Source of the DNA: Anthoceros angustus
Taxonomy: Eukaryota > Plantae > Anthocerotophyta
Assembly (NCBI GenBank): GCA_010909165.1
Contig: MU008158.1
Location: forward strand, 1,513,478-1,577,477
DNA length: 64,000 bases
Direction: 5' to 3'
The position numbers were made by a program, and so were the translations under genes. The notes beneath the pieces are model-generated. The model had not been told where the DNA came from and ran no database searches. It saw nothing but the letters and a program-made list of their open reading frames with translations. This document shows positions 12,380 to 45,859 of this stretch, one piece after another (position 1 is the first letter of the stretch; each line of letters begins with the position of its first letter).

Positions 12380-12472
12380 CACTTGCCGTGGACATGTAGG
12401 CAAAGTGTGGCAAGTAGAAGATGCGCATCAAGTTTTCAATGCTTGAGCATTCTCGTCTTACAACGTGCGAGT
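12380..12472 (+). pseudogene. Continuation of the PPR fragment
   Basis: TC-VDM*AKCG-VEDAHQVFN, near-identical to 16686-16755. Confidence 0.85.
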
Positions 12473-15250: not shown

Positions 15251-15253
15251 CGG

Positions 15254-15645
15254 CCAATTTTACCCCTAGTCTACCTAACATGCATATATAGCCCTACATG
15301 CAATATCTAGAAAAGCGAATTCCCATGGTTCAAGGAAGTTGCCTTCCTCGGCCCTCGAAATAGGTTTCTATCTACATGCTACTTTTCCCAAGGACCAAGG
15401 AACATCCTTCCAAACCCAAGACCAAGGACTAGGTTTCTATCTACATACCATTTTCCCAAGGACCAAGGAACATCCTTCCGAACCCCGAAGACCAAGGACT
15501 CGAAATAGGCTTCTATCTACTTGCTACTTTCCCAAGGACCAAGGAACATCATTCCGAAACCCCGAAGACCAAGGACTTGAGTCTGTTTCTTCCCAAACCC
15601 CAAAGACCAAGGACTTGAGTCCTACCTATTTGAATAGATAGGACT
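15254..15645. repeat. Minisatellite block, copy 3
   Basis: Starts with the same GCCAATTTTACCCCTAG boundary as 2895. Confidence 0.85.
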
Positions 15646-16039
15646 ACCGGACTCGGGACTTGAGCGGCCACCGCTTCGGTGTGACCACACACCAACCTCC
15701 TCCCATCACCACTTCCTAGGACTCCCTCTTGTGCGTGGGAAACTAGGCGAGGTAAGAGGAGCTCGCTCACCGACATTCGATTCAAGGAGTCCGGTGAGGT
15801 CCTCGGGTTAAACAACATGTTCAAGCCGCTTGTTGGATGAGAAGCTTGTTTCTTTGAATATGCAGTGGGTCATTGTGCTTCTCCTTCCAAGTCGAGCTCT
15901 CCCAAGAAGCTGAGCACAGGAGGTGTGCCGGATTGGATATGGGAGTCGTGACACCGTAACCATCGACGTTATGTGAGTAGGGAAAGCTTCGAGGCCGTTG
16001 GAGCTCTGAAAATCTGGCGTGATAGACTATTCTATTCCT

Positions 16040-17020
16040 CACCCTTATATATGTGCTAAAACTTTGTGCGAGATAAGAAGGACATGGTTGTGGGATGACG
16101 TTCATGATCTCACAAACTTGGGTGGTCGATCACATACTTGGGGAACCATATCTTGCGGATGTATGTATCCGGAGGTAGGCTACGGAGGGTGGGCAAACCA
16201 AATCCCTTCATGTGGTTTTCAATAATCTCCGCACATGCTACACATGGGGAGCCTAATGAGGCGATACAACTTTACTATGCGATGTGTCGCTCGGTGTGGC
16301 GGATGCCACATCTTTGTAGCAGCCCTTCAAGCTTGTGCATTTCTTTGTGGACTGGAATCTAGCGAAAGTGCATGATATGTTGCAGTGACATTCCACCGAA
16401 CTTGTTTATTGCCAATCGGTGGACATGTGCAAACGTGGTGGAAGAGGCAAACACGGTTTTCGATAGGTTAGGCGAAAGGATGTCGTGACATGGGCGGCCA
16501 CGATAGTTGGGTATGCAAATCATGGGCTTGGCCAAGAGGCGCTTGTGTATGGACAAATGGAGAAGGAGGGCACGATTGTGGGCAACCATGTTACCTTTGC
16601 TTGCCTTCCAAGGCTGTAACGCAAGTGCCTTCTGAAGGCGGTGCACTCCGCAGTTGTGGAGAGAGGCTAGATAACACACTTGTGGGCACTTGCCGTGGAC
16701 ATGTAGGCAAAGTGTGGCGAGTAGAAGATGCGCATCAAGTTTTCAATGCTTGAGCCCAAAGGATGTGGTGACTTGGAATGCCACGATTCTTTGGGTATGG
16801 ACGAAGGGCTTGGTCAAGAGGCGCTATTTTTGTATGGACGAATGCAACAGGAGGGCTGCTTGTGGGTGATGAGGTTACTTTTGCTTGGCTTTTGAAGGCA
16901 TGTGCAAGCATTGGTGCCTTGAGGTGTGCACTCACACTTGTGCAAAGAGGACATTTGGATAACGTACTTGTGGGCGCTTCGGTGGACTGTATGCCAAGAT
17001 GCATGCCTGTTTTTTGACAG
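16040..17020 (+). pseudogene. PLS-class PPR fragment, longest copy (about 9 repeats, no insertion)
   Basis: Same motifs as 3680-4348 continuing KCGRVEDAHQVFN..KDVVTWNATI-GYG..GLGQEALFLYGRMQQEG..DEVTFAWLLKACASIGAL..LDNVLVGA. Confidence 0.9.
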
Positions 17021-21280: not shown

Positions 21281-22140
21281 TTTTGTTAGCACGTCCACCG
21301 TCATCTCTTCTGTCGGGCAATAAAGAACTATAAACTTGCCTTCGTCAACTACTTATCTTATAAAGTGGAATTGCACTTCCACACGCTTTGTCCGAGCATG
21401 GAACTTCGGATTATATGTAAGCACGATAACACTTTGATTATCGCAAAAAGCGGCCTAGGAATCCTCTGGATCTCGCATAACTCCGAAAGTTGGAGAAGCT
21501 GCCAGAGTCCGCCTTTGCATGCATGGGTCAAAGAGCAGTATACTTAGCCTTGGTTGAGCTGAGTGCGACTACCTGCTACCACTTACTACTCCAGCTTGTT
21601 GTCGTGCCTCCGAGTAGATATACATAGCCGCTTGTGCTCTTTCTATCGTCGATGTTGCTGGCCCACTCGGCGTCGGTAAAGCCTTCAAGTTGTAAAGGCT
21701 CTCCTTGCTTGATATGTGACTGGTAAAGCAACCTAGGTCCGAGGTTACTCTTAGGTATCTAAATATCCTCTTAACTGCCTTCTAGTGAGCTTGAGTAGGA
21801 GCTGATAGGAACTGTGATAGGGCTCCCACTGAATAGGATAGGTCTGGTCTACTACAACTATGAGGTACATAAGACTACCTACGGCTGAAGAGTAAGGAGG
21901 AGGAGTAGTGTTTGAAGTGTCATCATGTTGATCTGCTTCCTTACTAAGCTTAAGGTTCATTTCCATGGGTGTAGAGATAGGTTTAGCCTCTAACATCTTA
22001 AACTTAGTTAGAATCTCTTGAATATACTTGGATTGATGAATAAGAATGCTTCGGGCCTTTCTATCTCTTAGAACCTGGATGCCTAAACAGAAAGAAAGCT
22101 CGCTACAAGTAGTCATAGAGAAACGCTAAGCTAGCATAGA
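21281..22140 (-). mobile_element. Ty1/Copia RT-RNase H fragment
   Basis: ELSFCLGIQVLRDRKARSILIHQSKYIQEILTKFKM..PYSSAVGSLMYL; KRIFRYL..LEGFTDAEWASNIDDRKSTSGY..VALSSTKAKY..NPKFHARTKRVEVQFHFIR..CPTEEMTVDVLTK. Confidence 0.95.
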
Positions 22141-25100
22141 TCCGTCTCTTCTAATGGCCTTAGTAGTATATAAAACAAATGTCTGCAGAAAGGGGTTCTC
22201 TACAGTAATAAGGGTTTGGCTAAAATCCCGCTCTTTTCTTAAACAAAACGGCGGGATGTTTTCTGGTTTTTAGCATGTGCACTCGGCTTGGAATAGGCGA
22301 TCAATTCCGTGGTGCCCGTTCCGCATGCTTTGACCGCTAGAATATCTCCATGCACACGTAAATGATCCATTTAAGAAGGTGTATATGCAATGAAATATCT
22401 GTTTTGATAGGTTTTCAGCATGTCTCCATGTCATCCAAAACGCGGGGTTTGCTCGGTGGCTTGCCTCCGGATATGAGTGCGCGCATAAAGTGCGCACTCA
22501 CGTTCTCGCGCGGAGAATTATATATTGGGTCCGCAGTCTGGAGAATGATTAACATATGAAATTCTTGGACAAATGAAGTTTGCAAATCAAGTGCAATGCA
22601 AAAACCGCTTATTTTCAAATATAGGAAGTCCTCACTTGCTGGTTTATCGCAGATCATCTCTACCATTGTGGAAGACCACATGTGCACTAACCCCGCTCCC
22701 AAGTGTCGGGATGAACGGTTTTTGTTTTGGATGTGTTAGAATAGCAAAGTGCTTTGAGAATCGCGAGTCGTCTTTTATACGGAATGGTCCTTGGCCCTTG
22801 GAGATAATAATAATTTTTCGACCCTTAGGTTTGACCCGTGGGATAGAAATAGAGTCCTTGGGTATTGGAATTTTTAGAATAAAAGGTGTCTATATATGCT
22901 GGGATGCTCACAATATGCCCGCTTGAGTAGTCAAGTGGGGTGGTGGCTAGTTCCACCACGGTGGCCAACCAAGAAAGGCAGAAGCGGATACCACCGCGAG
23001 CTTGAGCAACCACCGTGGGGAAGTAACCACCACGGTGGCTAAACCACCACCGTCGTGGAAGCGAGGTGGGTGGGGAAGTCACCCACTGAGTGTGCGAGAT
23101 GGAGGGATCTCACAGAGAATCAGCAGCCCGCCCGATTGTCCACGGGAGGAGAGGGTAAGGACCTCTCTCGGAAGAGGCGATTGTAACAAGGTCTCTTAAG
23201 AAGTAGAGACACACTCCTCTTTTAGAGACGGATGTCCATTTGGTCACATTCGACCTACAAATTGGCAACCAATCTAATTTGGTGCTTTTCCAAAACCAAG
23301 GGCAAAACCCACTATTTCCATTTCCGTAGTTGTCAAAAGCATCTTTTCTACCTTTTGATGTCTTTTAACCCGTTAAGAAAGGTCCATGGTTGGATCAAGT
23401 TGGAAAATACCCCGCTTTAAGGCTTTTTAAGGGCATTTTCGCAAAAACCGCTTTGTCGCTTTGAATCTGGACATTTATGACAATTTCGGGACCAATGTGC
23501 TAAGTTGAAAAGCGCAATGCCACCTCAATATGCTAACACGGTTTTTGTACACATTGGTCCAAGTATGCCCGACATCCCCGCCTTACCGATCGCAAGGTTG
23601 TGGCACCATAAAAACAAGAAGGACATGTGTCTTCATGTCAACTACCCGACACACAAACATGCATGCACACATCGATTTGGTACTATAGTGGGAGACTAGA
23701 GGTATAAGACACCAATATCCCACATGGGCCATATGCCCAACTATATGTCCGCGTTCCAAACTATACAAAAATGCTCACATATATTAAAAGAAAAGTGCCA
23801 TGGCACCATATAACCGATCTGGGACAACCGTCACTTTTCGAATTTAGTCAAGTGACCCATACTCATAAGCGAAGAGACAAGGGTGTCGGACCTAGGTTGG
23901 ATCTGCAGTCTAAGCGCGAAGACAAGCTTTTCTTTTAAGCTGCCAAAGGCACCGGACATCCGGTGACCTTTGCACCACGTTGTCCACACAAAGCCAACAA
24001 TTTACGCCCACTACTGTTATGATCAAGTTTGAAGTCTACGGCCGGTGCTCTAGCACTCCACCCACACCAAAACAAGCTGCCTATCCTAGCCAGGGCTTCG
24101 TGGCTCCCAAAAAGGAGGGACCTCATCAACCGCTTGCTTCCCTCCATGTCTGACAACCTCCCGCCTATATGTTGGCACCTACATACATGAAGAGCAGCGA
24201 TCGGTCATTGGCTCACAAAGAAGACCTTACTACCCATGCAAGAAGAATAGCACCGGTAACATCAAGCGGATGCAACATCAACGGTGCGGCAACATCAAGC
24301 GGCGGATGCGGAACATCAACAACACCAAAACCAGCAATCACCGAGCCCGGCCTCATGATGCATTGAAACACCTTACTACCAAGCCTTCACTCACCGGAGG
24401 CTCGGCTTCACATCGAACCCTCTGTGCCAATGCCTTGGCATTTTCCTTCACCGCCACTGCGCAAGCTCCCTCGACGCCTTCTTGCCCCGCCTCTTCCTCT
24501 AGCTCCTCCTTCGTCAACTCCCCGGGCTTTACGGCGGATATGGTCGAACCTCCAGCTCCATCTCACCGCCTTCACCTCCTTCCCAGCCATCGTGAGATCA
24601 TGGCGGATGTCACGGGCCTCACGCCTCCCTCCTCTCGGTTATAGTCCTCACCTCCTGGGCTCCCTCAAAGAAACCCTTATCCCCACCTCCCCACGTGGAA
24701 CCACGCAGAGGCTTTGGGAGTGGCAAGCGGATGCCACTCGAATAAGGGTTGGCCACCAATGGCGATGATGCCTCGGAGGGACGCCCCACGCTCCCTCAAA
24801 GTGGCTCTCCTCCGCCTCTTCTGCAATGTCTGGTGACCCGTGGTGGGGGTGGCCGCCACGCCGGTCCTCATATCCGCTTTGGTCTGCAACAACACTCTTA
24901 ACACCCGTCTGGTGGGCGTCGGTTTTCGCTCACCTCGGCATACCACCGGAAAATTGACGACACAGAATGGATTCTTCCTCCCATGCGTGCCGCTCAAACT
25001 GGAAGGCAAACAGGGAATTGGTTGCGGCTGTTGTTGGAGAGTAAAGCGAGTACTTGGCAAAGGGCCAAAATACCACATGGCGTGTGTTGGGTTTACGCTC

Positions 25101-25339
25101 CCGCTCAACACCAATAGCTCAAAAGCCCGCTGCACCTCAAGCGCCGAGCCCGCACCCTATCACAAAAACCCAAATATGGCGAAACAAGCGGAATGCTCAC
25201 CACAATTAGAAACGACCAAGAGCTTTAGCACCGGACATCCGGTGCAAAAGGCACAATGCATCAGCATCAAAACTCTATGTCAAAACATGAACACGGGATC
25301 ACACATCCACATATACCCTAAACATCTATGTCACGACTA

Positions 25340-28300
25340 TGTATTCACTGTCCTCGACCTCAGCACTCTCTCTGGGCCAACCTCGAAATTCTGAATCCTT
25401 GGTGGGTTAAGATCTGGCTCCTCACCGGAGTCCACACCTTCCAGCAAGTCTACCAAATAATCAACGGATGCATCAGAAGATTCAACGTTGTCCAAGTCTT
25501 GAATCAATTCGTTCGTCACCACTTGCTTCACCATCAGGAGGAAGCAAAGCGGTTCCTCACTTGGCTCGCTGTAACTCAAGACCTTCCTCCTCAAAAGCAT
25601 GTCCATTGTGTCTTTGCTCAAAGTCTTGTTCCTCGTCAACTCGAAATCATAACCCATGATTGTGGTCTCCAAAAGCTTGATTGGTTGCACATGTTTCTTC
25701 AAAGGGTGCTGCGTCGACCTTTTCTACTGCGGAGGTTGGTTGGCACCCACTCTTCCGAATACCTACCCTCCAATGCATTAGGGTTTTGATGCGCCACCGG
25801 TGGACTTGCGCTCGGTCCAGGCTTCATGGTCTACATCCAACCTTACCCACGGAAAGGGCCGTCCGGATCATCTCCACTGGACCGCAATCATCATGCCACC
25901 TGGATCTTTAACCGATCCTCGTATTTGCTCACGTTCCCTTCGCGGCATTCTGTGGCCTGTAAACCTCTCGCTCATGTCCAATATGCGTCTCGCAAGTGTA
26001 GCGTCCACTATCACTTCATCCGGAAGAGCCACTGCGGGTTCTTGAATGCTCCTCCGGTTATACCATTTCCATGTGTCCAATGGACGAAGAGCTCCAGACT
26101 ACTTCATATTAGCTCTTCCCAAAACCATCCCACCAGCGATGATGACCATTGAAGACTTGTGGAAGTTCTTAACGTCTGTTGTCTTCCACTCCGATAGCCC
26201 TATCAGCCGCACTTGCATGTTCTCTTTGGCCCTTGGATTTGCCGACTGCGGTGGTGAGTGGAGCCGCAATAATCTCCCTCTCGGGACTCCCGCATAAGTG
26301 AACACCACCATCGGCTCCAATGCAGCGTGATGAAGCTTGCACCTCGGGCCGTCACAAACACATGACTAGGCAACTCTTGAGTGATTTTAAAGCGATGTTG
26401 GAAACGTGATTATGGAGAGTAAATGTTGCGACGGACCCCAGTGCCACAAATATTGCTTAAAGTTGGGCACCTCTTTCATAAGATAGATCTTTGGTGTCGA
26501 GTATAAGCCCTCTCAAGGCAACCGATTAGCTCCGGCAAGGTGTAGGCCTCCTTGATTGCTAGCACAAAACGGAAAACATTTGATCAATCGATCATGGGTA
26601 TGGCCAACAATTAGAAATCCTAGTTTCACCTTCTTGAAAATACCTCGGTCCACTAACATGGCGCAATACGCCAACACTTCTTGGTTCTTATTCGAAAATT
26701 TGTATTGTCCATGCAGTAAAGAGTTTGAGGCAACTGGCCCTCCCATCCGTTAATAACATGCTGGACTACGGCAATTGTCCGTTAGGGTCATTTCGCAGAT
26801 TTGGATAGCTCGTAAACATAAGTTCTCATGTATTTGTTAAACACCAAAACTCCAACCACATGGACAGAGAGCAAGACTATCCACATCTTTGGGCACTCTG
26901 CGGAAATGAGGCAACTCGCTTTCTTTTGGTCCATACCATCTATCGCAATCCCCAGGTACTTGGTCGGTTGAGCCATACACTTGCCGTGATGCTTTGCCAT
27001 TTTCGCCCGCTCCATCTGTTGTTGATCCCGGTGGTAATAGAGGAGTTCCCTAAGTCTATCTGCACATACCAGACAAGTGCCATCGTCAATAGCAGCCCCC
27101 AGAACAACTCCAGAGTCCAGGCACGCTGGCCTACATCAACCTTTGTATTGAACCCTAAAGAACAGGGTCTAGGGTTTTCCGCCGACAACTACTATAAAAA
27201 AGGACACCTAGCAATCACCGGACATCCCGTGCTTAAAAAGGGAGCGGTTCAGATAGCTCATCGTTTCCGGCGTTTTAATTTTCGCTTTAAGCTTCTCACA
27301 TGTACAGAATCGGTTGCATCTTGGAATCTTCGGACCGAAATGCCGTATCCACGGCAAAATAGCTATAACAAACATGAGTGGTAATTGCTCTAGCCTGCCT
27401 AGCATACTCAATGTAAATCTCCTCTTTTGTGAATGTATCCTAGGTTGAACACTTCCTGGGTAGTCTTTCCACATTTCTTTTGAAAACATATCCATCCACA
27501 TGACTGCGGTCCGTATGAAGTTGAATTTTACCAGCCGCCCTCGGCAAACCTAGTCCCCTTCACCCGGGCCCGGGCATTCCGATGTCGTAGTGCACCAATA
27601 CGACTCGTAATGCCCTTACACAAATTGAAACCTTCCCATGTGGCGCTTGTTCACCCATCCGGTCACCATACACTTTCCTCGTCTTCGACAACATCAATAA
27701 GGTCTTGCAAATGCTTTCGCTCCCTTTGTCATGGAAAAAAAGAACAACGAAGTGACTTGATCGCCATTCCCGCCTTGCTAAACACTTTTTATAACATTGT
27801 CTCTTCATGTCACTGAAAGCTTCGCGATTACAATGCTTCGCCCATGACAACCCTTGCGGCACGGTTCTTTGTTGAGCAAACAACCCTATCGCGAGATTGC
27901 AACTCCAACCCCTGGACTTAGGATTAGCGAGGGCATTTCGGCAAATCTTCATTGTGATCTAGTGCCACATCTCCAAACAAGGCAATTGGATCACGTGCAG
28001 TTTGGTCGCTCGGCCTGCTCCCGCGTCCTCCATGACCCAATGCCGAAATCACAAGTCTACGATCGCATGCATCTTCTCATCGGAGACTCACCAACACTCT
28101 CGCCTTAATCTCTTTTGTTGTCATTATGCGGTGGTGTGACACAAGGTTGATGGTACTCTTAAACACCATGGACTTGTTGTAGGTGCCACCTTGTCACCTT
28201 CCGCCCAGAGCCACCCGCTTCGCGTGGATTTGGATCGAGCAGAACATCCTTGCCAATTTCTTGGCACCTGGGGATTTGAACTGGGTATATAGTGCCGGCT

Positions 28301-28770
28301 GCAGGCTGTCGAGGTGGGCCGAGGTTGCGCCTGTCGGGTGGTGGATATCGGGGCCGCCGCTCCAGTGCGCGATGTCGAGCTCGGACATGCCGGTCCACAT
28401 GTGCTGCAATTTGCTCCTGGTCTCGCTGCGCCCGTTCCGGAGTCCATCCCGGATCAAACAAGTACAGGTCTCCATCACTTGCAGCCGCGTCCAACGTATC
28501 ACCCAGCAAGTCGGTTTGATCCAAATCGCGTGTCCGGGTCTTGCTTGAGCGACCTTTCACCGGACGTCCGGGGTTTACAGGGTCAGCGTCTTGAATGTCG
28601 ACCACGTGGGAATTTGACACATTGCCTAGTGGACCCCATGCCTAGCATCTGCTGCGGCCTCGCCAAGTCCACGATATCCGACTCGGACACATGGCCGATG
28701 TCTTCATCGGTCACTAGTCATCGTTCACCAAATCAAAAACTCCTCCTCCGCATTGAGATCGCTTGCCATT
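25340..28770 (-). CDS. Sola-type (probably Sola2-like) DDD transposase, multi-exon, frameshifted in this sequence
   Basis: Catalytic motifs YLGIAIDGMDQKK (about 26950-26921), LPQTLY-MDN..NKNQEVLAYCAML..GIFKKV (about 26735-26630), GFLIVGHTH-(D)IDQMFS (about 26615-26572); N-terminal Cys motifs KIPRCNRF-CTCEKLK and YGDRM; acidic putative start MASDLNAEEEF at about 28767. Confidence 0.85.
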
Positions 28771-31277
28771 GCTCGTGACTAGTGAAAACGCAATTGTTGA
28801 GAACGCCGTGTGCTCGAGGAGGAGACCCGATTGCCCCGTTCAACATCATGTATAGATGCCTCGGTTCGGACCGCATTGATTATTGACAATTAGGACGGAT
28901 ATCTACTTTGCGGCTACAAATCATGGCGATTGAGGATCCTTAAATGCATTCACAGTTGCGAGAATCGAGGAGCGAGATTTTGCAATAGAAATTGAGTTTT
29001 GCGGGCAAAACTAGGCATATTCCATAAAATATGCTTTATTCTTTGTTTAGCGGTTGTGTCCTTACGGCGAAACATGGCGAAACGCGCTACGGTGCATCAA
29101 CCCAAATTTGCGATTCCACTCATTTGGCGGTATCGCAGTGGAGATCGTCTGTGTCCGGCCGTCACAGCCATCCACCCGTCGAGATCTGGAAAGGCGGGTT
29201 TGGCGCGAAAATATTGCGAGGAGATGCATATAGCGGGCACCAAAGGTTCACTCCAGTATTTTGGTAGCGTGGTGGTATTCGACCACTTCCATATCGGAGG
29301 TTCATATCGCCGTCGAGTCGGTGGATCTCCGGATCATCGGCTTCATCCTCACCGGTTGTCCGGTGATTCAAGAGGAGGGTATCAAGGTGGGGCGATGGGC
29401 GTGCTACTTGCATCCATAATCCATAGTGCGTGATGCCTCATTGCTACTTGGTTTGTGTTTTGCGATGGCACCTCGGACCAAGAAGCGGAGTAAAGGTCTT
29501 GAGCAGACGCGCTCGCGAGAAAAGCAGGCCCGGAAGGCCGGCGATTCGCAGATGCCCAACATTGTCTCTTCATGTCGCTTAAGCTTACAATGCTTGCCGA
29601 TTACATGATCCACAACCCTTGCGGCCGGTTCTTTGTTGAGCAAACAACCCTATCGCGAGATTGCAACTCCAACCCCTGGACTTAGGATTAGCGAGGCGGC
29701 ATTTCGGGCAAATCTTCATTGTGATCTAGTGCCATCTCCAAACAAGGCAATTGGATCACGTGCAGTTTGGTCGCTCGCACCTCTGGCAGTCCTCCATGAC
29801 CCAATGCCGAAATCGAACCAAGTCTACGATCGCATCTTCTCACCGTCGGAGACTCACCAACACTCTCTTAATCCGTCTTGTTGTCATTCGTGCGGTGGTG
29901 TGACACAAGGTTGATGGTACTCTTGCGAAACACCATGGACTTGTTGTAGGTGCCACCTTGTCACCTTCCGCTCGCCAGAGCCACCCGCTGCGTGGATTTG
30001 GATCGAGCAGAACATCCTTGCCAATTTCTTGGCACTGGCGATTTGAGCACTGGTATATAGTGCGGTGCCGAGGTGGGCCGAGGTTGCGCTGTCGGGTGGT
30101 GGATATCGGGCCGCCCGCTCGCGTTGTCGAGCTCGGACATGCCGGTCCACATGTCTTTTGCTCCACGGTCTCACGCCCGTTCGAGTCCATCCCGGATCAA
30201 ACAAGTAAAGGTCTCCATCACTTGCAGCGTCCAACGTATCACCCCCAAGTCGGTTTGATCCAAATGATGCGTGTCCGGGTCTTGAAGCCCTCACCGGACG
30301 TCCGGGGTTTACTGGGGTCGCGTCTTGAATGTCGACCACGTGGGAATTTGACACATTGCCTAGTGGACCCCATGCCTAATCTGCTGCGGCCTCGCCAAGT
30401 CCACGATATCCGACTCGACACATGGCCGATGTCTTCATCGGTCACTAGTCGTTCACCAAATCAAAAACTCCTCCTCGCATTGAGATCGCTTGCCATTGCT
30501 CGTGACTAGTGAAAACGCAATTGTTGAGAACGCCGTGTGCTCGAGGAGGAGACCCGATTGCCCCGTTCAACATCATGTATAGATGCCTGCCTCGGTTCGG
30601 ACCGCATTGATTATTGACAATTAGGACGGATATCTACTTTGCGGCTACAAATCATGGCGATTGAGGATCCTTAAATGCATTCACAGTTGAATCGAGGAGC
30701 CCGAGATTTTGCAATAGAAATTGAGTTTTGCGGCAAAACTAGGCATATTCCATAAAATATGCTTTATTCTTTGTTTAGCGGTTGTGTCCCTGCGCGAAAC
30801 ATGGCGGAGCGTTTGCGGCTACTGCATCAACCCAAATTTGCGATTCCACTCATTTGGCGGTATTCTGCTCGATAAATCATGTCCGTCACACCCATCCACC
30901 CGTCGTGACTGCGGAAAGCGGTTTGGCGAAAATATTGCGAGGAGATGCATATAGCGGGCACCAAAGGTTCACTCCAAGTATTTTGGTAACGTGGTGGTAT
31001 TCGACCACTTCCATATCGGAGGTTCATATCGCCGTCGAGTCGGTGGATCTCCGGATCATCGGCTTCATCCTCACCGTTGTCCGGTGATTGAAGAGGAGGG
31101 TATCAAGGTGGGGCGATGGGCGTGCTACCAATCCATAATCCATAGTGCGTGATGCCTCATTGCTACTTGGTTTGTGTTTTGCGGATGGCACCTCGGACCA
31201 AGAAGCGGAGTAAAGGTCTTGAGCAGGCCGGCTGCGGCGAGAAAAGCGGCGGCAGGCGGCGATTCGCAGATGCCCCG
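27793..31277. repeat. Tandem duplication (27793-29557 / 29558-31277) covering the transposase 5' region
   Basis: AACATTGTC at 27793, 29558 and 31278 marks the unit boundaries. Confidence 0.9.
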
Positions 31278-32099
31278 AACATTGTCACGAGTCCGGTCCG
31301 AAGGCCTCCAAGACCCATAGCATGACAACTTTGACCCGCGACACTACCTCGTCCGAACATCATTCCAAAGTCCATACAAGCGGGCGAAATCGACATGATC
31401 GGAAAGATGTTCTGGAACACTCTCCTTTGATATGTCGGACAGAATTGGTCAGACACGTCTGTTGGACATGTATATCTGACATCTTGGATGCACACTCAAG
31501 TATAAAGTCTTCTCTTGGTCTTTGTTTTGTTCACGCTTTTGTGGAGAAGGATGACCAAGTGCATAATTTTCCTCACTCAAGACCGACACTTCTCAAGCTG
31601 ACCCCACTCCGAGTATACTCAGGCGATCCGGACTTTTGACCCCGTGGCTTGGGAAAGTGTGAGAGAGGAACAGGGGTTGCGTAACAATGATGGACACAAA
31701 GTGTTCCACAAAGTGTTGCACCAAATTTGCTTAGAAGGAATCGAAAACTGGTTCGAGCAAGTCCGGGTCGATTGAACCCAAGAGTCGGTCTTAGAGTAGG
31801 AGTGGGTCAGGGGCCGGGTTCGTCAAGGCTGGCCCGTCCGTCAATCTCTGAAGCAAACCAACAATGCAAATTAGAAGCAACCCAGATCGCTTGGGAAGCA
31901 ACGATCTGCGTCTTAGAGGCATCCCAACAATGCTTCTTCAATACCACGATGGGGATCCAGCACGCCTCGGTTTCCGTCGGCAAGCCGGTGGTGTCCATGA
32001 TACTACCGCCACCGGGCGTCCAGCGGTTTCACTGTGGCCGGACTTGGTGAGCCACTTCCATTTTACTCAAGGTAGTCGATCGGGTGTGAGGAGGACGTC

Positions 32100-35000
32100 A
32101 CCCCGAGGACACCGAGGGCTTTATGGATGGCATTCTACCTTGTGGGGAGGGCGAAGATGCGCAGCTTGGAGGCGAAGGTGGGTCGGAAGAGGAGGAGGAG
32201 AACTTGAAGGTGATGGCGAGGATGACCTCGGATATTATCCCGCGCGGGATGGTTCACGCTTCGGGCCGATCGCAGGAGGGTGCAGGCAGGCCTTCATGGG
32301 AAATTTGAAGAAAGGGGAAAGAGGAGAGGCCTGCAGATGGCAAACATATCCGGAAAAGGGACGGCGCGGTAGCAGAAAGCCAAGAAACCTGTGGCAAGAC
32401 GGAGAAGCCTGGAATTGTGGAGGAGGAGGAGGAAGAGGTTCCACCGCCAAGGTTTGTGGAGAGAGCTAAGAGGTCGCCCAGCGATGATAGGCTCGCCATA
32501 AAAGCGATGCAAGTCGGGACGTCGAAAGGGACGGTATTGCTATCAAGAGAGTCCGGGAGTCTACCTTGAAGTTGCCAATCAAGTCGCAGACCCAAGATCT
32601 GTGAGGCGCTAAGGTGAGGAAGCCGGATCTCGCGTGGGTAGAGGCTTTGATGCGAAGATGAAACACGCCCATGGGTAGCGGTGTCGCCAATGGTTGTGGT
32701 TGTCGACCCTCGCGTGTCCTCACAAAGAGAACTTTGACGTTGAGAAGGTGGACTGAGGGCTTTACAATTTCTTCGTCTTGGGAGGGAACCATTCCTTCCA
32801 GGCAAGGTCCCGGCTTTCTTTGCGATCTGTACCCAATGAAGGAAGAGTTCAAGTGGATGGATGCATATGTGCTAGCTGGACTCACTGAGGACGAGATGAG
32901 GATCGTAGCCACAGACCACAACACCATCGCAGATGCCAGGAAGACATTCACCTTCATGGGGCGGTGCGTTACATCGTGAGTTGATGCGGGGAGCGAAGGG
33001 CTTGAAGTGCGATGTAGGGCGGAAGCTGGATGTATATGCCCGCCAGGCGGGATCCCCAAGTGGGATGCGCAGCATGGCCCCAAGGTTCGATATCACCGTG
33101 GACAACCGGACACTTGATTATCGTGGCGAAGGTTGATGAAGAAGTGTGGAGGTATGTGGACGAGATATTTGAGAAGTGGGAATGTGGCTTGCACGAACAA
33201 ATAGATGCGGCCCGAGCCCTAGCGCCAAACAAACAAAGGCCGAGGGAAGTCAAGGCCAAGCTACTGATGCGAGACCTTGTAGTCATAGAGGTTAAAGATG
33301 CGGATGTGCGGTGAGAGTGTGGAAGTGCTTTCAAGGGATTGAACATTCGGCGGCAACAACAATTTGAAGACAAGATGCATGAAGGTCTTGTCTGGGAAAT
33401 GAGTTTACGGCAAATGCAGGATTGGGTGGAGAAAGCCAAAAAGCGAACCTCATTCACGTCACACTTGCGAAGAACCCGAATTGCGAGCGTTTGAGCGGGT
33501 TAGGAGCGGTATCCTCAATACAAGACTGTGGACGGATCGGCAACCGGCTTTCAAAAATATGGTAAGTGTGAACCCGAGCAAGTATGGAATGTCCACACCG
33601 GACGGTGCTTGTCATATGTTTGATTTCTAAGAATCTTGGTGGGCATCCGATTTGTTTCTCGGGCGCCGACGCTTGCGGCCCATGTACACTCCCATATGCC
33701 CATGAACACTCATGGTTGATGGTTTTTGCCTTGTTGTGCGAGCCAATGCTTGCCTAACGTGGAGTGCACTCCGAGAGTTTCAAGGAACATGTGTTGAAGG
33801 CCAAAGCATGGAAGATTATGGCGAGATGAGGATCGTAGCCACAGACCACAACACCATCGCAGATGCCGGAAGACATTCACCTTCATGGACGGTACGTTAC
33901 ATCGTAAGTGAGTTGATGCGGGAGCGAAGGGCTTGAAGTGCGATGTAGGCGGAAGCTGGATGTATATGCCCGCGGGATCCCCAAGTGGGATGCGCAGCAT
34001 GGCCCCAAGGTTCGAGATCACCGATGGTGGACAACCGGACACTTGATTCTGCGTGGCGAAGGTTGATGAAGAAGTGTGGAGGTATGTGGACGAGATATTT
34101 GAGAAGTGGGAATGTGCGCTTGCACGAACAAATAGATGCGGCCCGAGCCCTAGCGCCAAACAAACAAAGGCCGAGGGAAGTCAAGGCCAACTGCACTGCG
34201 AGACCTTGTGGTCATAGAGGTTAAAGATGCGGATGTGCCAGTGAGAGTGTGGAAGTGCTTTCAAGGGATTGAACATTCGGCAGCTGGCAACAACAATTTG
34301 AAGACAGCATGCATGAAGGTCTTGTCTGGGAAATGAGTTTACGGCAAATGCAGGATTGGGTGGAGAAAGCCAAAAAACTGAACCTCATTCACGTCACACT
34401 TGCGAAGAACCTGAATTGCGAGACGTTTGAGCAGGTTAGGGAGCGGTATCCTCAATACAGCACTGTGGATCAGATCAGCAACTTCCAACCGGCTTTCAAA
34501 AATATGGTAAGTGTGAACCCGAGCAAGTATGGAATGTCCACACCGGACGGCCGGTGCTTGTCATATGTTTGATTTCTAAGAATGCTGGTGGGCATCCGAT
34601 TTGTTTTGGCTGAGCGCAACGGCCCATGTACACTCCCATATGCCCATGAACACTCATGGTTGATGGTTTTTGCCTTGTTGTGCGTGAGCCAATGCTTGCC
34701 TAACGTGGAGTGCACTCCCTGAGAGTTTCAAGGAACATGTGTTGAAGGCCAAAGCGTGGAAGATTATGGCAGATGAGCTGACGATTCTTTGGAGACCTCC
34801 GATCCGATAAGTTGAAGACGATCAGAGATGCTTCCGGGAGATCATGCAGGATAGGAATAATTTGTGGTAACATCGTGAGAATGGCTCAGTTTGTGGAACC
34901 CCGTCCGTTTGCCCTGTTCCTATTGGACTTGCCACGAGGGTTGCATCTGGATGCCAACTCCAAGGAGTATGACAGCGATTCAGGATGAGTTTGAAAATAT

Positions 35001-35600
35001 CATATTGCAATTCCGGGCATCACGACATTATTTCGCGTCGTGGTATTTCATTCCCGGATGACATGTCCATGGTACGGGAGGTTTTGCTTGCTTGTAAAAG
35101 TGTCACTTCCGCACAAAACTAATGTGAAAGCGTTGCAGACAAAAGTATGATGCAGATTATATCACCACGGGCTGGATCGTTGAAGCGGATTGTGTGCCAC
35201 AACATTTCTCACTCGCAACTTTGTTGAATGATGGCACGGGGTTGACAACCGCTTTGAGGAGAAGGTGGAACATAAGTGTTATAACACGAGATGATAGGGT
35301 AGTTTCCCATACCGAAGCCTATCGTTGTTGAGGAAGTTGATGGAGCCGTACGGTGGAAGGTGGGTCTGGATGGGTGTGCGTGCTCGGATCGGTATGGTAG
35401 CCGCTCTCAAGTGCGGACGCAACGTGATATCAGTAGACGTAGATCCCAGAGCAGCTCAATTCATGGACCTCCGTCTCAATACTTTAGAGAACTGGCCAAG
35501 CGAGGAGGAAGAGTTGGGAGAGGTTGAAGGCTACGCGGGGCCTAAGACGTTCACCAAAGAACCGATGATGAACAATGTGGCAAGGAGCCGGGGCAGTTTT
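32100..35600 (+). CDS. ParB-like domain fused to a beta-class N4-cytosine/N6-adenine DNA methyltransferase (multi-exon, frameshifted in this sequence)
   Basis: Acidic N-terminus; VRKPDLAWVEALM..VSPMVVVVDP..YNFFVLGGNHSFQAR (32763-32807)..YP..F..AYVLAGLTEDEMRIVATDHN; CGNIVRMAQFVEPRPFALFLLDLPRG (DLPRG 34926-34940); SHTE(K)P-SLLRKLMEPY (about 35305); LDGCACS(G) (35366-35389); GMVAALKCGRNVISVDVDPRAAQFMDLRL. Intron donor ATG|GTAAGT at 34507. Confidence 0.8.
32894..34770. repeat. Tandem duplication (32894-33823 / 33824-34770) inside the ParB-MTase gene
   Basis: AGATGAG at 32894, 33824 and 34771 marks the boundaries. Confidence 0.9.
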
Positions 35601-36960
35601 GTGGATCTCAAGCGCCACGCAATCGGAAAGCATTCTACACCCAGAGGTGTGACAGATCCTTCCATGTCTTGTGCTGTGGGCGGTGTGGCGACAGTTGCAG
35701 TTGACAAAGGTAATAGGGAGCCTGGGGGCTACGTGGCGAGTTTTGGGCACAGGAACATAGTGCTACAGCTCTCGGGCGGCGATGGACAAGGTCACCTTCC
35801 CCTGGACACGACCACTAAGGACTATGATCCATTGGTTCACCCCTACCATGGATAGGTGACCGGAAAGACTGGGGCATTAGTACCTAATGGTTGTGAATCT
35901 CGATCTGGGTGGGGCATTGGTAATGCCAATCTGCGGTCGACTCCGGCATCGTTGGTGAGGCACGCATGTAGAGGTGTCCGCTTACGGTGAGCACAAACAC
36001 CGGACAACCGGTGTTGAGGTGGATCGAGCTATCTTTGTCCGGTTGTGTCTGGTGATGACCAACCCGAGTGCATGTTCTCGTGTGCTTGTTTTCTGGATTG
36101 CAAGCATACGATTTTGCGCTTTGTTCTTTGTCGCCATTGAATGTTGAGGCGTGATGCTACCATAGCGGGCCCATGATCACCCTTGCAATAAGAACCCCGC
36201 CGCTTCCATAACCCGTAAAATAGCCAGCGGTCAAACTCCTCCCACATTCGCGTATTGTCATCATGGCGTTTACAAACTACCGGTGCATACGATATATCAA
36301 GCATTGAGCATGTCCGATGACATAACCATCGATCATTGCGGATATGTCATACGGCTACTTACGCATGCAGAACATTGTAGCCGATTAGGTTAGGCCAATG
36401 GGCATGGATTATGTCGGTTCGCAGGTGAGGTTCAGAAATGACGTTCAACACATCCAAACGTTGGTGCCTGAGGGGGACTTTCGAGAGCACGCTGGAGAAT
36501 GCAAGCCGCACGGCCTCCGTACTTTCATGTCATGTTTCGCAACATAGAAATGACTGCCACTATCCAGGGGAACCCAACACTTGACTTGCGCCGGAGTCGA
36601 AGTTCACTGATGAAGCCGCGTTCACCGGATATCCACGGTCATAGAATTACGATGATGCGGCATCCACCGTTGTTTACCGTTCATGCATGCAACCCTTCAA
36701 ACCCGTTATGTCGACATTTTGAAATTCATGATGTCCATATGACTACATGGCTTGTTACATATGGTTTCCATCTTGATCGTAACCATTTTGTGGTGGGTAA
36801 TTAGAGGATTGTGTTACCTTAAAAAAACCATAAGGTAAAACCCTCAAAACACATGGTTTCATTCTTCACTTGGACTTTCACACTTAAGGTTTTGGCCAAA
36901 GTTTTGAAAACGTGACAAAGCACGGTTTCCATCGTCAAACCCCAAATTTCACACCCTCAA

Positions 36961-36988
36961 AAGTAGAGGCGAGGAGTCGCCTCTACTT
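36961..36988. other. Perfect 12-bp-stem hairpin just inside the right Sola TIR
   Basis: AAGTAGAGGCGA-GGAG-TCGCCTCTACTT. Confidence 0.85.
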
Positions 36989-38345
36989 TAGAGACCTTGT
37001 TTTGTGCTACGTCCGGATGAGGATGCTCATGTCACAGCCACACTGCATGGTGAGTGCTCACTCTAAGCGTGTATGTGGTTGTTGGGACGGGAGGCGAGAA
37101 ACTCTTGGGTACATCTTGACCGCCACAGGCGTTTACGATGGTTCCTTGAATAGGAGGCGCCTATCCTCCATAGTGGTCTTTGGAGGAGATGAGTGAGGCG
37201 GAGGCGAGCATGGAGGAGGAGCACAGTATGGTTGTCGGCGAGGAGGCGGGACAATGGACATAGAGGTCACCAGGCGCGCGCGTCCGGGGAAGCGCGAGGA
37301 AACTCGAGGCGGTGAGTGAGGTGGAGGTTGTGGGGAAAATCGCTCGGATCGGGCGGGCGAGGCGAGGGTCCCCATGGGCCGTAGGCGGCAATCAACAGAG
37401 TCGCGATAGCCTAGGACCGGGGTTTCCTTTTCGAGGCGAGGATAGGGAGTTCCATCAAGTAAATTGTTGCTTAGATTGGTAAGGCGCTCGTGGTAGGAGC
37501 TACAATTTTAGACACTAAAGAAGAGTGTGTTGGACCACGGCGGATGTATAAGAGACCCTTTGGGTGTCTCTCAAAGGCAGACGATTTCGGTGTGAACTTC
37601 CGTGTATCGAACCGTGTGGGGTTGATTGGAGCGTCGTCGGCATCAAGCGTTGTTGCGTCTTCTACAAGAAGGCGGGAAGATCTCTGGATGGTCGAGGCGG
37701 AGTGGCCAAGCTCACGCTGGGGTGGCGGAGTGGCCGTGGCCGGAAAAAGAGGTAGGATTGGTGGTGGGGGCGAATCCTTGGCCGGGGTTTTCTTCACGAT
37801 CCTCTTTTCCAGCTTCTGCCACCGGTGTGTTCATTCCATGAGAGAGGGTAGTGTGGCCCAAGGAGGGGGGTCATGTGGCCCGAGGGGGGTCATGTGGCCC
37901 GTGAGGCGAGGAGAGTTCATTAGGAAGGGAGGTTCCCAGGGAGTAGATGAGTCTTGTTGGGAGGGATTGTGAGGTGTGTGAGGGAAAATCGGAAGCGTGG
38001 AGGAGTGGGCGTGTGGTGGAATGAAATTCCGAGTAAGTGAGGCGTATATAGGTGTCCGTATGCCCATAGCCCCTAGGTTAGTGTCGAGGCCGGGTGGACT
38101 CCATGACGGTGCGTGGTGGGACCCCGCCACGGTGGCGACCCGCTGCGGTGGAGTCTACTGCAGTGGTGGGTTTGGGCGGGGAGTAGGCTGGAGAAGGTGG
38201 GGTAGTGGCGGCGGATGGGTCTAGAATCCATAGATTTAGCACACCTTGACACAACACCATTCCTTGGGATCGAATCCTAGGACTATAACGACATAGAGGG
38301 TAAATGTGGCCTCTTTGCGTCTTCGGATGCAAAATCCATTCCACA

Positions 38346-38361
38346 TTTTGGCGCTGCCGGG
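38346..38361 (+). promoter_or_regulatory. Primer-binding site of the + LTR element
   Basis: TTTTGGCGCTGCCGGG directly after the LTR-terminal CA; resembles the Athila-type TGGCGCCGTTGCCGGG PBS. Confidence 0.75.
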
Positions 38362-38399
38362 AATGAAATCACAAGGTTATAGGGGACTAACCATAGCTT

Positions 38400-41300
38400 A
38401 GGTGTCTAGTTTTGGAGTGTATCTAGTTAGGTAGATGGATGCCACGGGTTGAGTCGGAGGGTTGAGTCAAGTCGGGACGGAAGGCCACAAGAGAAGCGAC
38501 AACGCCAAGCACCGAGAGAGGTTGAAAAGGGTTGCAAAACCAAGCGAGTTGAGGAGGATCCAAATGAAGACGCACCTGGGGAGAAGAAGAAGGAAGTAAG
38601 GAATCAACCAGGACGGGGTCCGATCTTGTTGGAGCAAGATCCCCAACCTTCGACTTGACGAGGTACCACCGCCAAGGAACCGGACCAATTCCATCCACCG
38701 ACTCTTCCAAAAGTGTGCGGATCGCTGGAGATCAATCGACTCTGCGGAACCGTTGTTGACCAACCACGCCGAATCAGAACGATAGTCATGACCACCACCA
38801 CGGTGGTGGTCACCACCAAGCAACCTTATCAGATGGAGAGGGAAGGGTATGAAGACCTGAAATTTGTTGAGCGTTTTGAGTGACATTTGCAAAACCAGAA
38901 GCGGAGATGCAGATTCAAATTGCTCTATGGAGTTCTTCGGGGGTCCAGTAAGGAAGGAATACCTCAAATCAGCCCACACCTCAGAACCTATGAAGAGTTA
39001 AAACCGCCTGTGGAGAGGTCTTTGACGTGGAGGGATACGTGTTGTCAAGCTTGAAAGCTGCAGAGGGAAGAAGGAAACCTTGCGCGTATGTGGAGAGGTT
39101 TCACCACGCGATCGTGGCCCTCACTCGGAGTTGCAGACACGTGGTTCGCTAAAGGCCCGGGTTCTAAGATGGGGAGACACGTAAGGTTACAAGCGGAGAA
39201 GAATTTGGGCAAGGCTATCAAGGCGGCGCTAAACTATGAGGAATCCAACCCGCAAGGGAGGAGGAAGGCTAAGAAGGAGAAGAAGAAGTCGGGACGGAAA
39301 AAGAAGGATCCTCATCCTCCTAAGAAAGTTCATCGTGAAGAGAGCTCCACAGAAGATTCCATGTAAAGTTCCTCGGAGGAGGAAACGAGTGATTCGAGGA
39401 AGCGCCATCGACGAGGAGCGCCAAATGGAAAAAGAAAATGAAGGGTCGTGCACGGACAACAAGGAGTCGGCAAGGGCAAAGCAAGAGCGTATGCTGTCGA
39501 AAAGGACGCGAACAAGCGAGGAGGGAGAACAGGTGAGCCAAGAAAGTAGAACAATGTGGAAACAAGATGGAGGAGATGATGGCAAAATTGAGAAATTCCA
39601 TCTTAATGCGGTCAAGGAACATGAGAGGCGAGAGCATCACGAATCCACGAGCCAACCTCTCTTCTCGCTCAACGTGGGCAAGAGGACACTCCAAAGCTAA
39701 TTGTCCGACGACAAGGGTACACTGGGATATGAGGAAGAGGAGGAAGAGGGTCCTGGAAGAAGATACATATCGATCCAGGAGGTTCAACAACCCAAGTGTA
39801 CCCAAAAAGCATGTACCCACCAACCCACGTAACTACTTCGGTAGGCGTCAGAATCCACCGGCGGGTAACAATCCAATGGGCACCATCTTACAACCGCCAT
39901 TAACCTTGACACTATGCATGACCGTTCCCTTATCCAACTCTGGCAATGGAGATTTTGATAAGTGTCAAGATTGGAAGCAGGCATGAAGTGTGCCCCGCCA
40001 AAGCCCGAAAGACAGGAGATCGCGCGACCACCCGAACGGAGTTCACCAAGACCAAACCTAAGTGGTCCGGGTGGAGGATGCACTTATGGCGGTGAGTGGA
40101 GGATGCTGATTGGAACCCGAGAGCTTGAGGGGTTAGACATCAGAGGAAGCGATTATTATGGGAAGCCGGTCCATGAACAAGGAACACAAAAGCAAAAGAG
40201 GAGGCGAAAGAAAGAAGAAAGGAGGCGGATTTAACCCAATGGATCGGATGAGGAGAGAGGTCCACCATGGCAAATACCAACACCGTGAACGCTTGGCCAA
40301 GGACAAAAAACAAGTCCCGCAGTGACTTGGCGGATGGACCATATGTAGCAAGTGATGCAAAGGAGACATTGAGTGTCTCAACGGAAAGGCGAATGAAGGG
40401 GCTGGAGCCGCGAGGGGTGGAACCCCACCGATTTCAGAGAAAGTTAATGAACGAGTTAGGGTTTCCAGACGCACGGGAGAAGTCATGATATGATACAAGA
40501 AGAAGGAAGGAGGCTACGGGGAAAGGCGGGTGTCGATTTCCACCACCTGTGGAGTCCACCACCCCACCCGAAGGCCACCGTACCCCAAGTCGTGACGAAC
40601 CGGGAACCCCACAACCAACCAACCTGGATGGCAGAAGGTCATGGGCCACCGCTTTTCAATCTCGCCGAGGCCATCATGCAACCAATATTTCATGATGTAT
40701 CACATAACCTCCGGTGACAATCCGATAGCAATGATCGAGTGTTAAAAGAGGCGTCCCAAAAGAGGCTAATGTTCCTATAAATTTCGCCACAGTGAACTTG
40801 GTATCCATGGTGGATCAAGGCCCACCACTGTGGAAATTTCGGATGTGTCATTAAAGGAGTGCCTCTCTCGGCTTCTGTAAATATTACGACAAGACACGGC
40901 TAGAAATTGTTGGATATTGAACATACTAAGGTTTTGTGGCTAATGACATGTCCGTAATGGTGCCGGGGGAACCTACTAGGGGTGTTAACGCATCATTGGA
41001 ACCATCCCTACTTGATGGATTATGTAGTCATCCAAAAAATCGCTGTGGTACGACGTCTAATTGGCGAACATGGATGTACGTGATCGCAATGCACGCCTCA
41101 AGTCGAAGGAAGTCGGTTTTAAACCGCTGGAATGGGATCCCAAGACCAAGGAAGGAAGGATGTGCCTATCGTGGAGTAAGACATGTATGCAGAAACTCCA
41201 ACTGAAAGGGGTACACTCGCAGAGGACACGTCCCGGGAGATGGGAGAGGAAGATAGGTTCCGCGCACACATCTCATGGGTCTGGATGAGCGGGACTACCT

Positions 41301-42342
41301 GGGAGAGATATCCCATATACAACCCAAGAGGTCACATGGTAACCGCCGAGTGCTCAAGCGGAAGAGGTCAAGGTGGATTCTAAGCGTGGAGAAAGCTGGA
41401 GGAGGCGCTACGCAGCCTACGCCAAGATTTGTTTAGGAATGGGGCATGAGAGAAGAGGAACATGAGCCAGAAGGATTCGGGGTTAGCACCGCATGCGAGC
41501 GAGTGGCAGAAATGATGAAGTCAAGGACGTTGAGGTTCTTCCGTGGAAGGTGCTCAAATTTCCGTAACAATGGATGCGGCGTTGGAGGAAGGCATGAAGT
41601 AGTCGCCATGCATCCATCGATGTTTTCGCCTTCGAGGTGACATGAAGGATTCCCCAAAGAGTGGGCAGCATAGGATTGACTCGAACCGTGAGCAATCCCA
41701 AGGATTCCACAGCAAGTTAACCAAGTACTCCCTCAAGGTAAAGGATCGCTTGGAGATGTACCTCAAGGCGGATGTGATCTATCCTATAGTCAATACCGAA
41801 TGGGTGGCTCCCATAGTGGTAGTACCTAAGAGGCGCCTGTGCAAAATCCGAGTTTGTCAGACCGAGAAGGTTGAATAAAGTCACCAAGAAGGATCACCTG
41901 CTAATTACCCATAATATCCGGATCCGTCGCAGTGCACGGCGTATTCATTCCCAGACTCGTACTCCGGGTATAATCAGCCTTAGGGAGAGCGATTGGCCTC
42001 GACCGCTTTTACAATGCACTAGGGGACATATGCTTACAAGCGAAATGACGGCTTTGAGGAGCACGGGTCCTTCGCGAGCCATCACAAATTTTCAAGGACT
42101 TCCTCCGATTTTATGGAAGTCAGGATTTACTTCAGATGGGCAGCTAAGGACCATCCGGCCGCACTTAAGTGCCTGACTGTACAGCCACGCACTATGCACG
42201 CAAGTGCTACTAAGATGTCAAGGAATTGCTTGGGGCATCCAATTTCAAGTAGGTATAGAAGTAGATCCGGACAAGGTAAAGGTCACACCCTTAGAGCACC
42301 AACGCTAAAGGAACTCCGGGTTCCCCTGGAATGGTCGGGTAT
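38400..42342 (+). pseudogene. gag-pol: gag-pol (gag, zinc knuckle, protease, RT) of the + element
   Basis: KLEKLQREEGNLA-YVERF (gag), GHSKANCP (knuckle), ADVIYPIVNTEWVAPIVVVPK..KIRVC..NKVTKKDH (RT); ends LRGFLGMVGY at the insertion point. Confidence 0.9.
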
Positions 42343-45842: not shown

Positions 45843-45859
45843 TACTCCCTTCTCATTTG

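Follow-up and report, generated by a model that had tools for sequence, protein, structure and literature searches.

The window analysed here, a stretch of 64,000 nucleotides from the genome of the hornwort Anthoceros angustus (contig MU008158.1, positions 1,513,478 to 1,577,477), contains one copy of a cut-and-paste transposon of the Sola type, with a DUF7869 transposase and a 4-bp target-site duplication (TSD), in the long terminal repeat (LTR) of a retrotransposon. On the strand opposite the transposase, the element carries an intron-containing accessory gene, the product of which is predicted to consist of a ParB/Srx-like domain, a helical region and then a beta-class (N6_N4) amino-methyltransferase fold. 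Taken as a whole, the explanation that best accounts for the data, i.e., a Sola-type element with a regular accessory gene, targeting through palindromes and an enzyme with an altered motif IV, appears to us quite probable.

Borders, target site and transposase of the element

The element spans positions 23185-37001 of the window and is bounded by terminal inverted repeats (TIRs) and by the tetranucleotide TTGT on each flank (Table 1). The TIR arms are 26 nt long, imperfect and 81% complementary, and the terminal 16-mer is restricted to the two element ends within the 64-kb window, with a chance expectation of 0.02. A comparison of the window with itself provided an empty-site control, in which two paralogous LTR copies (reverse complement of 52860-52950, 43630-43710) are uninterrupted and have one TTGT each. 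Because these paralogous LTRs show the unfilled site with a single TTGT, the borders of the element and its 4-bp TSD are proven, and the insertion target is the LTR of a retrotransposon. Hence, the delimitation of the element by TIRs and TSDs, which had been proposed in a preliminary description made from the sequence alone, was borne out by the TIRs, the TTGT flanks and the empty paralogous sites. When compared with positions 42343-55091, the flanks of the insertion (22667-23184 and 36999-42343) are 79-90% identical to the LTRs and the inner part of the neighbouring element, whose LTRs are 3.5 kb long. The motif TAGAGAC is repeated close to both element ends. Hairpin folding detected a hairpin at the right end (Table 1) and no counterpart of it at the left end of the element.

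On the minus strand, positions 26516-26749 match the Pfam family DUF7869 (PF25273, E=1.7e-13), which was also returned by a language-model search of the transposase. Positions 27063-26573 align with the 580-aa DUF7869 transposase of a metagenome element (contig L003; tblastn, E=1e-9), and a frameshift-tolerant alignment, the C-terminal blocks of which were not counted as evidence, showed that the two have the motifs DGMDQ, LPHFRRVPKD, MDNT and GHTH-DIDQ in common. Sola elements have DDD transposases and 4-bp TSDs, and are known in the moss Physcomitrella (PMC10741241). With its 4-bp TSD, its TIRs and its DUF7869 transposase, the element of the window is Sola-like, as the preliminary description had claimed for an element with a ParB/methyltransferase gene. 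A more precise placement, in Sola1, would rest on the likeness to an Ectocarpus element with the same accessory gene, as the passages of PMC12477816 on that element describe it; a literature search returned no paper mentioning DUF7869.

Homology of the divergent gene through a chain of relatives

The motifs that had been reported from the plus strand (GGNH, DLPRG, a K-P motif, LDGCACS and GRNVISVDVD) are all present at the places given for them, spread over changing reading frames. When searched against Pfam, ten plus-strand pieces gave no match, and the open reading frames (ORFs) between the two genes and on the antisense strands gave no Pfam family. A word-indexed protein search with a 185-aa C-terminal piece found nothing. 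Since no piece of the window reaches N6_N4_Mtase, the methyltransferase call for this copy goes through a chain of relatives.

The chain starts from the ParB piece, which, when searched against 1.8 billion representatives, found five proteins, and the search gave three fragments from Logan contigs and a Chara braunii protein matching N6_N4_Mtase. The family was then extended to about 25 Chara paralogs, many of which are named 'DNA methylase N-4/N-6 domain-containing' in UniRef, to the full-length metagenome proteins P0015 (789 aa) and P0022, and to fragments from ENA. A profile built from the Chara and metagenome proteins gave collinear matches on the pieces of the window. On a read-through of the gene, with an X at each break, this profile scored 19.5 bits over the ParB part and 26.7 bits (E=7e-11, single-target search) over the linker and the first half of the methyltransferase, with DLPRG aligned to DlPYG of the profile. 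A closer relative is found in the overlapping contigs L005 and L006, the ORFs of which match the window by tblastn (E=8e-20, 4e-15 and 6e-9). The methyltransferase region of L005 in turn matches P0015 (E=7e-17), and P0015 reaches PF01555 (N6_N4_Mtase) with 39.9 bits, for a cut-off of 26.7 bits; the Chara protein P0003 and a piece of L006 score 27.3 and 25.1 bits, respectively, against the same cut-off. The frameshift-tolerant alignment of the gene was made with low penalties and over-fits outside 32776-35603, and its outer blocks were not taken as evidence. In summary, the divergent second gene with ParB/Srx-like and N6_N4 methyltransferase parts is upheld by homology via L005, P0015 and Chara. 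As to the Pfam profile matches that the preliminary description expected from the protein, the methyltransferase one is found in relatives, which reach PF01555, and not in the pieces of the window, and ParBc was not matched by P0015 at E<=0.1.

Predicted folds of the two domains

We then compared the family with solved structures. The family profile matched M1.HpyAVI/DpnA in the PDB (E=4e-8). An AlphaFold model of P0015 had a mean predicted local distance difference test score (pLDDT) of 70.8, with 75-95 for the domains, and matched CcrM, M.BceJIV, MboIIA, M1.HpyAVI and RsrI with Z-scores of 18-20.5, and N4CMT with a Z-score of 17.5. The nearest solved structures are thus N6-adenine enzymes, which score above N4CMT. 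The motif order is also kept in the window, with motif IV (DLPRG) before PY-x-KP and motif I (LDGCACS). As far as the modelled relative and the profile can tell, the methyltransferase fold is firm in this gene family.

Residues 100-240 of the P0015 model matched PadC (Z 8.2), the ParB N-terminal part of Pnob8 (7.8), KorB (7.6), a serine kinase of the ParB/Srx type (7.0) and sulfiredoxin (6.6). These ParB/Srx proteins are the top-scoring structural matches outside the methyltransferase domain (ranks 21-25). A glycine-rich GG-x-H loop is present as GGNH in the window and as GGGHS in relatives. From the model, the family probably has a ParB/Srx fold in this region.

The methyltransferase domain is 24-29% identical to phage and bacterial enzymes, and 76 of the 100 nearest clusters in another language-model search are N6_N4_Mtase, the matches listed coming from phages and bacteria. 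These similarities would be expected if the gene came from bacterial or phage contamination or from a recent transfer, an origin that we consider extremely improbable: the gene lies inside a eukaryotic transposon that is itself inserted in an LTR, it has a GT-AG intron conserved with a relative, and no phage record covers even 80% of P0015 (0 of the 301 matching ones), the match being limited to residues 534-788. A similarity to phage ParB-methylases over the full length of the protein is likewise not supported by the last result.

Transposons of this type regularly carry the gene

The same arrangement of genes was found in other elements. On the 8.9-kb metagenome contig L003, the gene of P0015 is on the plus strand, and the minus strand has the DUF7869 gene with an upstream ORF. 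The contig has inverted repeats of its own on either side of these genes and probably represents a whole element, about 8.9 kb long. Its inverted repeats contain AACAC(C/T)GAATTCGATGAAACCGG near both ends (1-120 and 8800-8915), and its termini also begin with AACA. In the 16-kb Logan contig L005, N-terminal ORFs of the transposase lie on the minus strand and the ParB-methyltransferase gene on the plus strand. Directly after this gene, the element of L005 terminates in GGAGACCTTGTT, the same terminus as that of the window element, and the first 11 nt of the window TIR are common to L005. In Ectocarpus, the 21.5-kb element Sola1-1_Ec32 has a gene for a 1104-aa protein with ParB-like and N4C/N6A methyltransferase parts opposite the transposase, according to the passages of PMC12477816 that describe it. 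The preliminary description had left open whether such a linkage with Sola was already on record; it is, for the Ectocarpus Sola1 element, in that paper (Genome Biol 2025). In transposons of this type, the gene regularly lies head-to-head with the transposase as a passenger. That it was captured once by this copy, or is a separate insertion nested in it, is very improbable given the same divergent pair in L003, L005 and Ectocarpus, and no TIR or TSD pair was found that brackets the gene by itself; neither of these two possibilities, raised as checks in the preliminary description, refutes the linkage.

The 4-kb contig L006, from a second run, is 100% identical to L005:2406-6737 minus three segments of 95, 97 and 112 bp. 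The second and third segments start with GTAAGT and end with CAG, and the first fits GT-AG after a 7-nt slide of its border. With three GT-AG introns as its only difference from L005, L006 probably derives from a spliced transcript of the L005 copy. The position of intron 3 of L005 matches the GTAAGT donor at 34507 in the window. Over 225 codons compared between L006 and L002, a contig of a sister subfamily, pN was 0.285 and pS 0.755, the latter value being saturated, which indicates from these sequences that the family was under purifying selection in the past. A Peptidase_C48 (Ulp1-like) ORF on the minus strand of L005 (11918-12892) lies outside the element of this relative and is unrelated to the finding.

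In Chara, locus L001 (BFEA01000570) has two intronless copies of the ParB-methyltransferase gene (10115-12168 and 36058-38094), and a search within 6 kb of a Chara gene copy found no inverted repeat on both sides of it. P0003, a Chara protein annotated with 1825 aa, looks like a fusion of two gene copies.

Motif IV lacks its aromatic residue in the land-plant-type sequences

We next looked at the catalytic motifs. The three land-plant-type sequences found (those of the window, of L002 and of L005/L006) all read DLPRG at motif IV, where the Chara and metagenome relatives have DFPYG or DLPYG. A leucine or phenylalanine in place of the first proline of motif IV is, judging from the sequences, tolerable, because DLPYG also occurs in an ordinary bacterial enzyme (P0033). 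In amino-methyltransferases, the aromatic residue of (D/N/S)PP(Y/F/W) stacks on the flipped base. The DLPRG of the window departs from this N6_N4 pattern, and the stacking residue is lost since the tyrosine is replaced by an arginine. To our knowledge, there is no active enzyme with an arginine at this position. With DLPRG as motif IV, the land-plant-type protein is, from its sequence, more likely to have changed or lost its enzymatic activity and to act mainly by binding DNA.

This bears on the proposal, made in the preliminary description, that the gene writes N4-methylcytosine (4mC) or N6-methyladenine (6mA). An active 6mA/4mC writer that marks the element or the host chromatin would be in keeping with the beta-class fold and with the motif order IV, PY-x-KP, I, as well as with the conservation of motif I and of the KP motif in the land-plant-type sequences and with the purifying selection in the family. 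Self-modification was in addition proposed by the authors for the Ectocarpus protein, in the passages of PMC12477816 on that element. However, the arginine that replaces the base-stacking aromatic residue in the window, L002 and L005/L006 makes such an activity rather doubtful, and the proposal is not supported for the land-plant-type sequences.

Palindromes accompany the gene

If one mismatch is allowed, there are eight sites of the palindrome CACCGG-N4-CCGGTG in the element and none in the rest of the 64 kb, for an expectation of 0.11 sites in the window. The flanks of these eight palindromes are unrelated to one another. This palindrome was absent from L001, L003 and L005, and other palindromes were found in relatives. 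The sister subfamily L002 has two copies of CACAGG-AYRT-CCTGTG, CACAGGACATCCTGTG and CACAGGATGTCCTGTG (L002:2034-2097), in its homologue of the intron in which the window site at 34541 lies. The changes in the two arms of these sites match each other and preserve the palindrome. In L007, four 15-bp CGATGCA-S-TGCATCG sites, 40-53 bp apart, lie just upstream of a metagenomic ParB-domain gene that belongs to the family (317-465). The Chara locus L001 has 14 TTATAG-NN-CTATAA sites (9519-13026, 21853-22040, 35050-35570 and 44769), of which 10 lie in clusters next to the two gene copies. Lineage-specific palindromes of 14-16 bp thus accompany the gene in four lineages. By analogy with parS, this supports, and does not prove, that the palindromes are the cognate site of the ParB-like part.

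Assembly errors in the window

Both genes of the element have broken frames as assembled. We compared the window with short-read contigs from the same organism (run X1, a small public DNA run). The two 0.94-kb copies at 32892-33830 and 33822-34777 differ by 20 mismatches and 27 indel events. The short-read contigs join 33828 to 34782 and 32912 to 33844, i.e., they have one 0.94-kb copy only. Nearly all the other differences between these contigs and the window are 1-nt indels (one substitution and six gaps in 245 nt; two substitutions and 17 gaps in the 229 nt of the contig over 35307-35535), and the codons of DLPRG have no differing letters. The 1.77-kb pair between the two genes (Table 1) is, from its sequence, probably an assembly artefact as well, since it has the same signature as the 0.94-kb duplication that was disproved by the reads. 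Adjacent indel-rich tandem pairs occur throughout the window and not only in the element. In positions 1-16700, tandem pairs of 1-2 kb with 85-90% identity have gap openings at least as frequent as mismatches (for example 7471-9486 and 9478-11569, 2961-4404 and 4436-5808, 5772-6833 and 6825-7848, 1-1217 and 1564-2767). Across the window, these pairs look like an assembly artefact of this genome.

The window thus comes from a long-read assembly that was not polished and that has an indel error of roughly 2-3%. Given how rich in indels it is when compared with the short-read contigs, its frame breaks are no sign of decay. The joints in the short-read contigs also show that the length of 13.8 kb given in the preliminary description includes at least one tandem duplication that is false; the true element measures about 12.9 kb, a value that falls to about 11.1 kb should the same apply to the 1.77-kb pair. 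Neither broken frames nor lengths of elements in this assembly should hence be treated as biology.

Table 1. Features of the Sola-type element and its borders in the window (a dot stands for a feature without strand)
Feature	Positions	Strand	Basis or remark
Left target-site duplication, TTGT	23181..23184	.	Single TTGT in empty paralogous sites
Left terminal inverted repeat, begins AACAAGGTCTC	23185..23210	+	Inverted-repeat comparison, terminal 16-mer count
Palindrome CACCGG-N4-CCGGTG	23950..23965	.	
Palindrome CACCGG-N4-CCGGTG	25229..25244	.	
Transposase catalytic core, DUF7869 type (DGMDQ, MDNT, GHTH-DIDQ)	26500..27104	-	Pfam PF25273, tblastn, frameshift-tolerant alignment; assembled frames broken
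Palindrome, one mismatch	27216..27231	.	
Probable N-terminal part of the transposase	27362..27958	-	Weak similarity, low-scoring blocks; 132-aa open stretch
Two adjacent copies of a 1.77-kb unit between the two genes (27793-29566, 29558-31286)	27793..31286	.	1638 matches, 34 mismatches, 77 indel events
Palindrome, one mismatch	28558..28573	.	Twin at 30292 in the duplicated unit
Palindrome	29350..29365	.	Twin near 31071 in the duplicated unit
ParB/Srx-like and beta-class amino-methyltransferase-like gene, extent of similarity to relatives	32374..35813	+	tblastn with L005/L006 ORFs, frameshift-tolerant alignment, family profile
ParB/Srx-like domain, GGNH at 32781-32792	32518..32934	+	Family profile; fold tested on the relative P0015
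Second copy of a 0.94-kb unit, false tandem duplication	33829..34781	.	Short-read contigs skip the second copy
Intron, GTAAGT donor, same place as intron 3 of L005	34507..34710	+	Contains one palindrome
Palindrome within the intron of the methyltransferase gene	34541..34556	.	
Methyltransferase-like domain	34711..35603	+	tblastn, frameshift-tolerant alignment, family profile
Motif IV variant DLPRG	34926..34940	+	Aligned with DlPYG of the family profile; no differing letters in short-read contigs
PY-x-KP region, counterpart of HPTQKP, split between frames	35301..35327	+	Compare SPYEKP in L006, CPYQKP in Chara
Motif I region, LDGCACS (35366) then GRNVISVDVD (35415), split between frames	35366..35444	+	
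Palindrome downstream of the methyltransferase gene	35998..36013	.	
Right-end hairpin, 17-bp stem, from the TIR and the sequence just inside	36956..36993	+	-15.9 kcal/mol, z -7.8
Right terminal inverted repeat	36976..37001	-	Inverted-repeat comparison, terminal 16-mer count
Right target-site duplication, TTGT	37002..37005	.	Single TTGT in empty paralogous sites

Discussion

Several observations weigh against our explanation of the element and of its accessory gene. DUF7869 is the sole Pfam family reached by any piece of the window. The ParB assignment consists of fold matches with middling Z-scores in the model of one relative; a profile of the ParB region found nothing in the PDB by sequence at E<=10, and a model of the ParB region by itself was poor (pLDDT 63) and had no significant Foldseek match. 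The palindromes could instead be sites of the transposase or targets of the methylase. In the 49.5 kb of the Chara locus L001, there was no DUF7869 match. The only transcribed relative copy, L005/L006, has frame changes and a stop, and its GGNH core is deleted, and in a small RNA run from the same sample as the window (X2, 29 million letters) no RNA was placed on the gene.

Some of these observations would also fit a dead relic, i.e., frames that have truly decayed in the present copy, and perhaps in all members of its family in the genome, and a gene that no longer does anything. The alignment of the gene passes through dozens of frame changes, the transcribed L005/L006 copy is broken despite accurate short-read contigs, and the gene is without RNA in run X2. 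However, this run is tiny, the short-read contigs differ from the window almost exclusively by 1-nt indels and skip the second 0.94-kb copy, and indel-rich adjacent duplications fill the window, which implies that the breaks are largely assembly error. We regard a dead relic as possible, though on the unlikely side.

Among known systems, the Ectocarpus element Sola1-1_Ec32 is a giant DNA transposon of the Sola type with an extra gene on the strand opposite the transposase, like the element described here; it differs in its host, a brown alga, and in its size (21.5 kb, with a protein of 1104 aa), and the likeness is one of description (PMC12477816, passages on this element). Those passages mention neither palindromes nor a variant of motif IV. 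What is new here is the host, the odd motif IV (DLPRG) and the element-specific palindromes, the pairing of Sola with a ParB-methyltransferase having already been published for Ectocarpus, as the same passages show. The Chara paralogs, P0015 and P0022 have a protein architecture collinear with that of the window gene, and P0015 lies beside a DUF7869 transposase between inverted repeats. Unlike the window gene, they are intronless and have DFPYG or DLPYG as motif IV, and one Chara locus has no DUF7869 nearby.

Phage and prophage genes, such as those of ParB-terminase loci (PMC4738411), also join a ParB-type module to an amino-methyltransferase, but their match to P0015 is limited to the methyltransferase domain (24-29% identity), with the ParB part uncovered. 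A eukaryotic fusion of a ParB module with an adenine methyltransferase is known in the chlorophyte-type Dam with an N-terminal helix-turn-helix of the ParB type (Iyer et al. 2016, PMC4738411). The chlorophyte-type enzyme is a member of the Dam/DpnM group (PMC4738411), whereas the family described here is closest to DpnA/M1.HpyAVI, CcrM and MboIIA (N6_N4_Mtase). The bdelloid N4CMT and Marchantia DN4MT1 are likewise bacterial-type amino-methyltransferases in eukaryotes, and N4CMT is among the fold matches (Z 17.5). For neither of them, however, has a ParB domain or a location on a Sola element been reported; DN4MT1 has a TSPPY motif and no ParB (bioRxiv 10.1101/2021.02.12.428880), and N6-adenine enzymes score higher here. 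With TSPPY in DN4MT1 and N6-adenine enzymes as the nearest structures, a tie to these two enzymes, which the preliminary description had named, is not supported. Retrotransposons of charophytes and dinoflagellates carry C5 DNA methyltransferases, according to the passages of PMC5890265 that deal with them; like the present element, they are mobile elements with a DNA methyltransferase of their own, but they are class I elements and their enzymes are C5 cytosine methyltransferases.

How the accessory protein might act can be sketched from these features. The ParB-like part would recognise the 16-bp palindromes (candidate site CACCGGACATCCGGTG), as ParB recognises parS, and this recognition would bring the methyltransferase module onto the element's own DNA. 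In the Chara and metagenome relatives, in which motif IV is intact, the module could methylate. In the land-plant-type lineage, the DLPRG protein would mainly bind DNA. In the most specific form of this scheme, which we put forward very tentatively and consider, as it stands, improbable, the ParB/methyltransferase-like protein and the palindromes scattered over the element would serve self-recognition and co-evolve as a pair within each lineage, and the DLPRG protein would be a pseudo-enzyme that binds and does not methylate. If the pseudo-enzyme reading is true, the protein may, for example, act in the assembly or licensing of the transposition complex, or protect the element against silencing.

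Transposons with a DNA-modifying or DNA-marking protein of their own bear on how mobile elements escape from, or make use of, host silencing. The combination of a Sola element with a ParB-methyltransferase has been seen in a brown alga, in a stonewort, in metagenome contigs and now in this genome, and this distribution suggests that the partnership is old and successful. Taken with the lineage-specific palindromes, the loss of the aromatic residue of the catalytic motif, which is conserved, provides a concrete and testable hypothesis on the binding and the activity of the protein.

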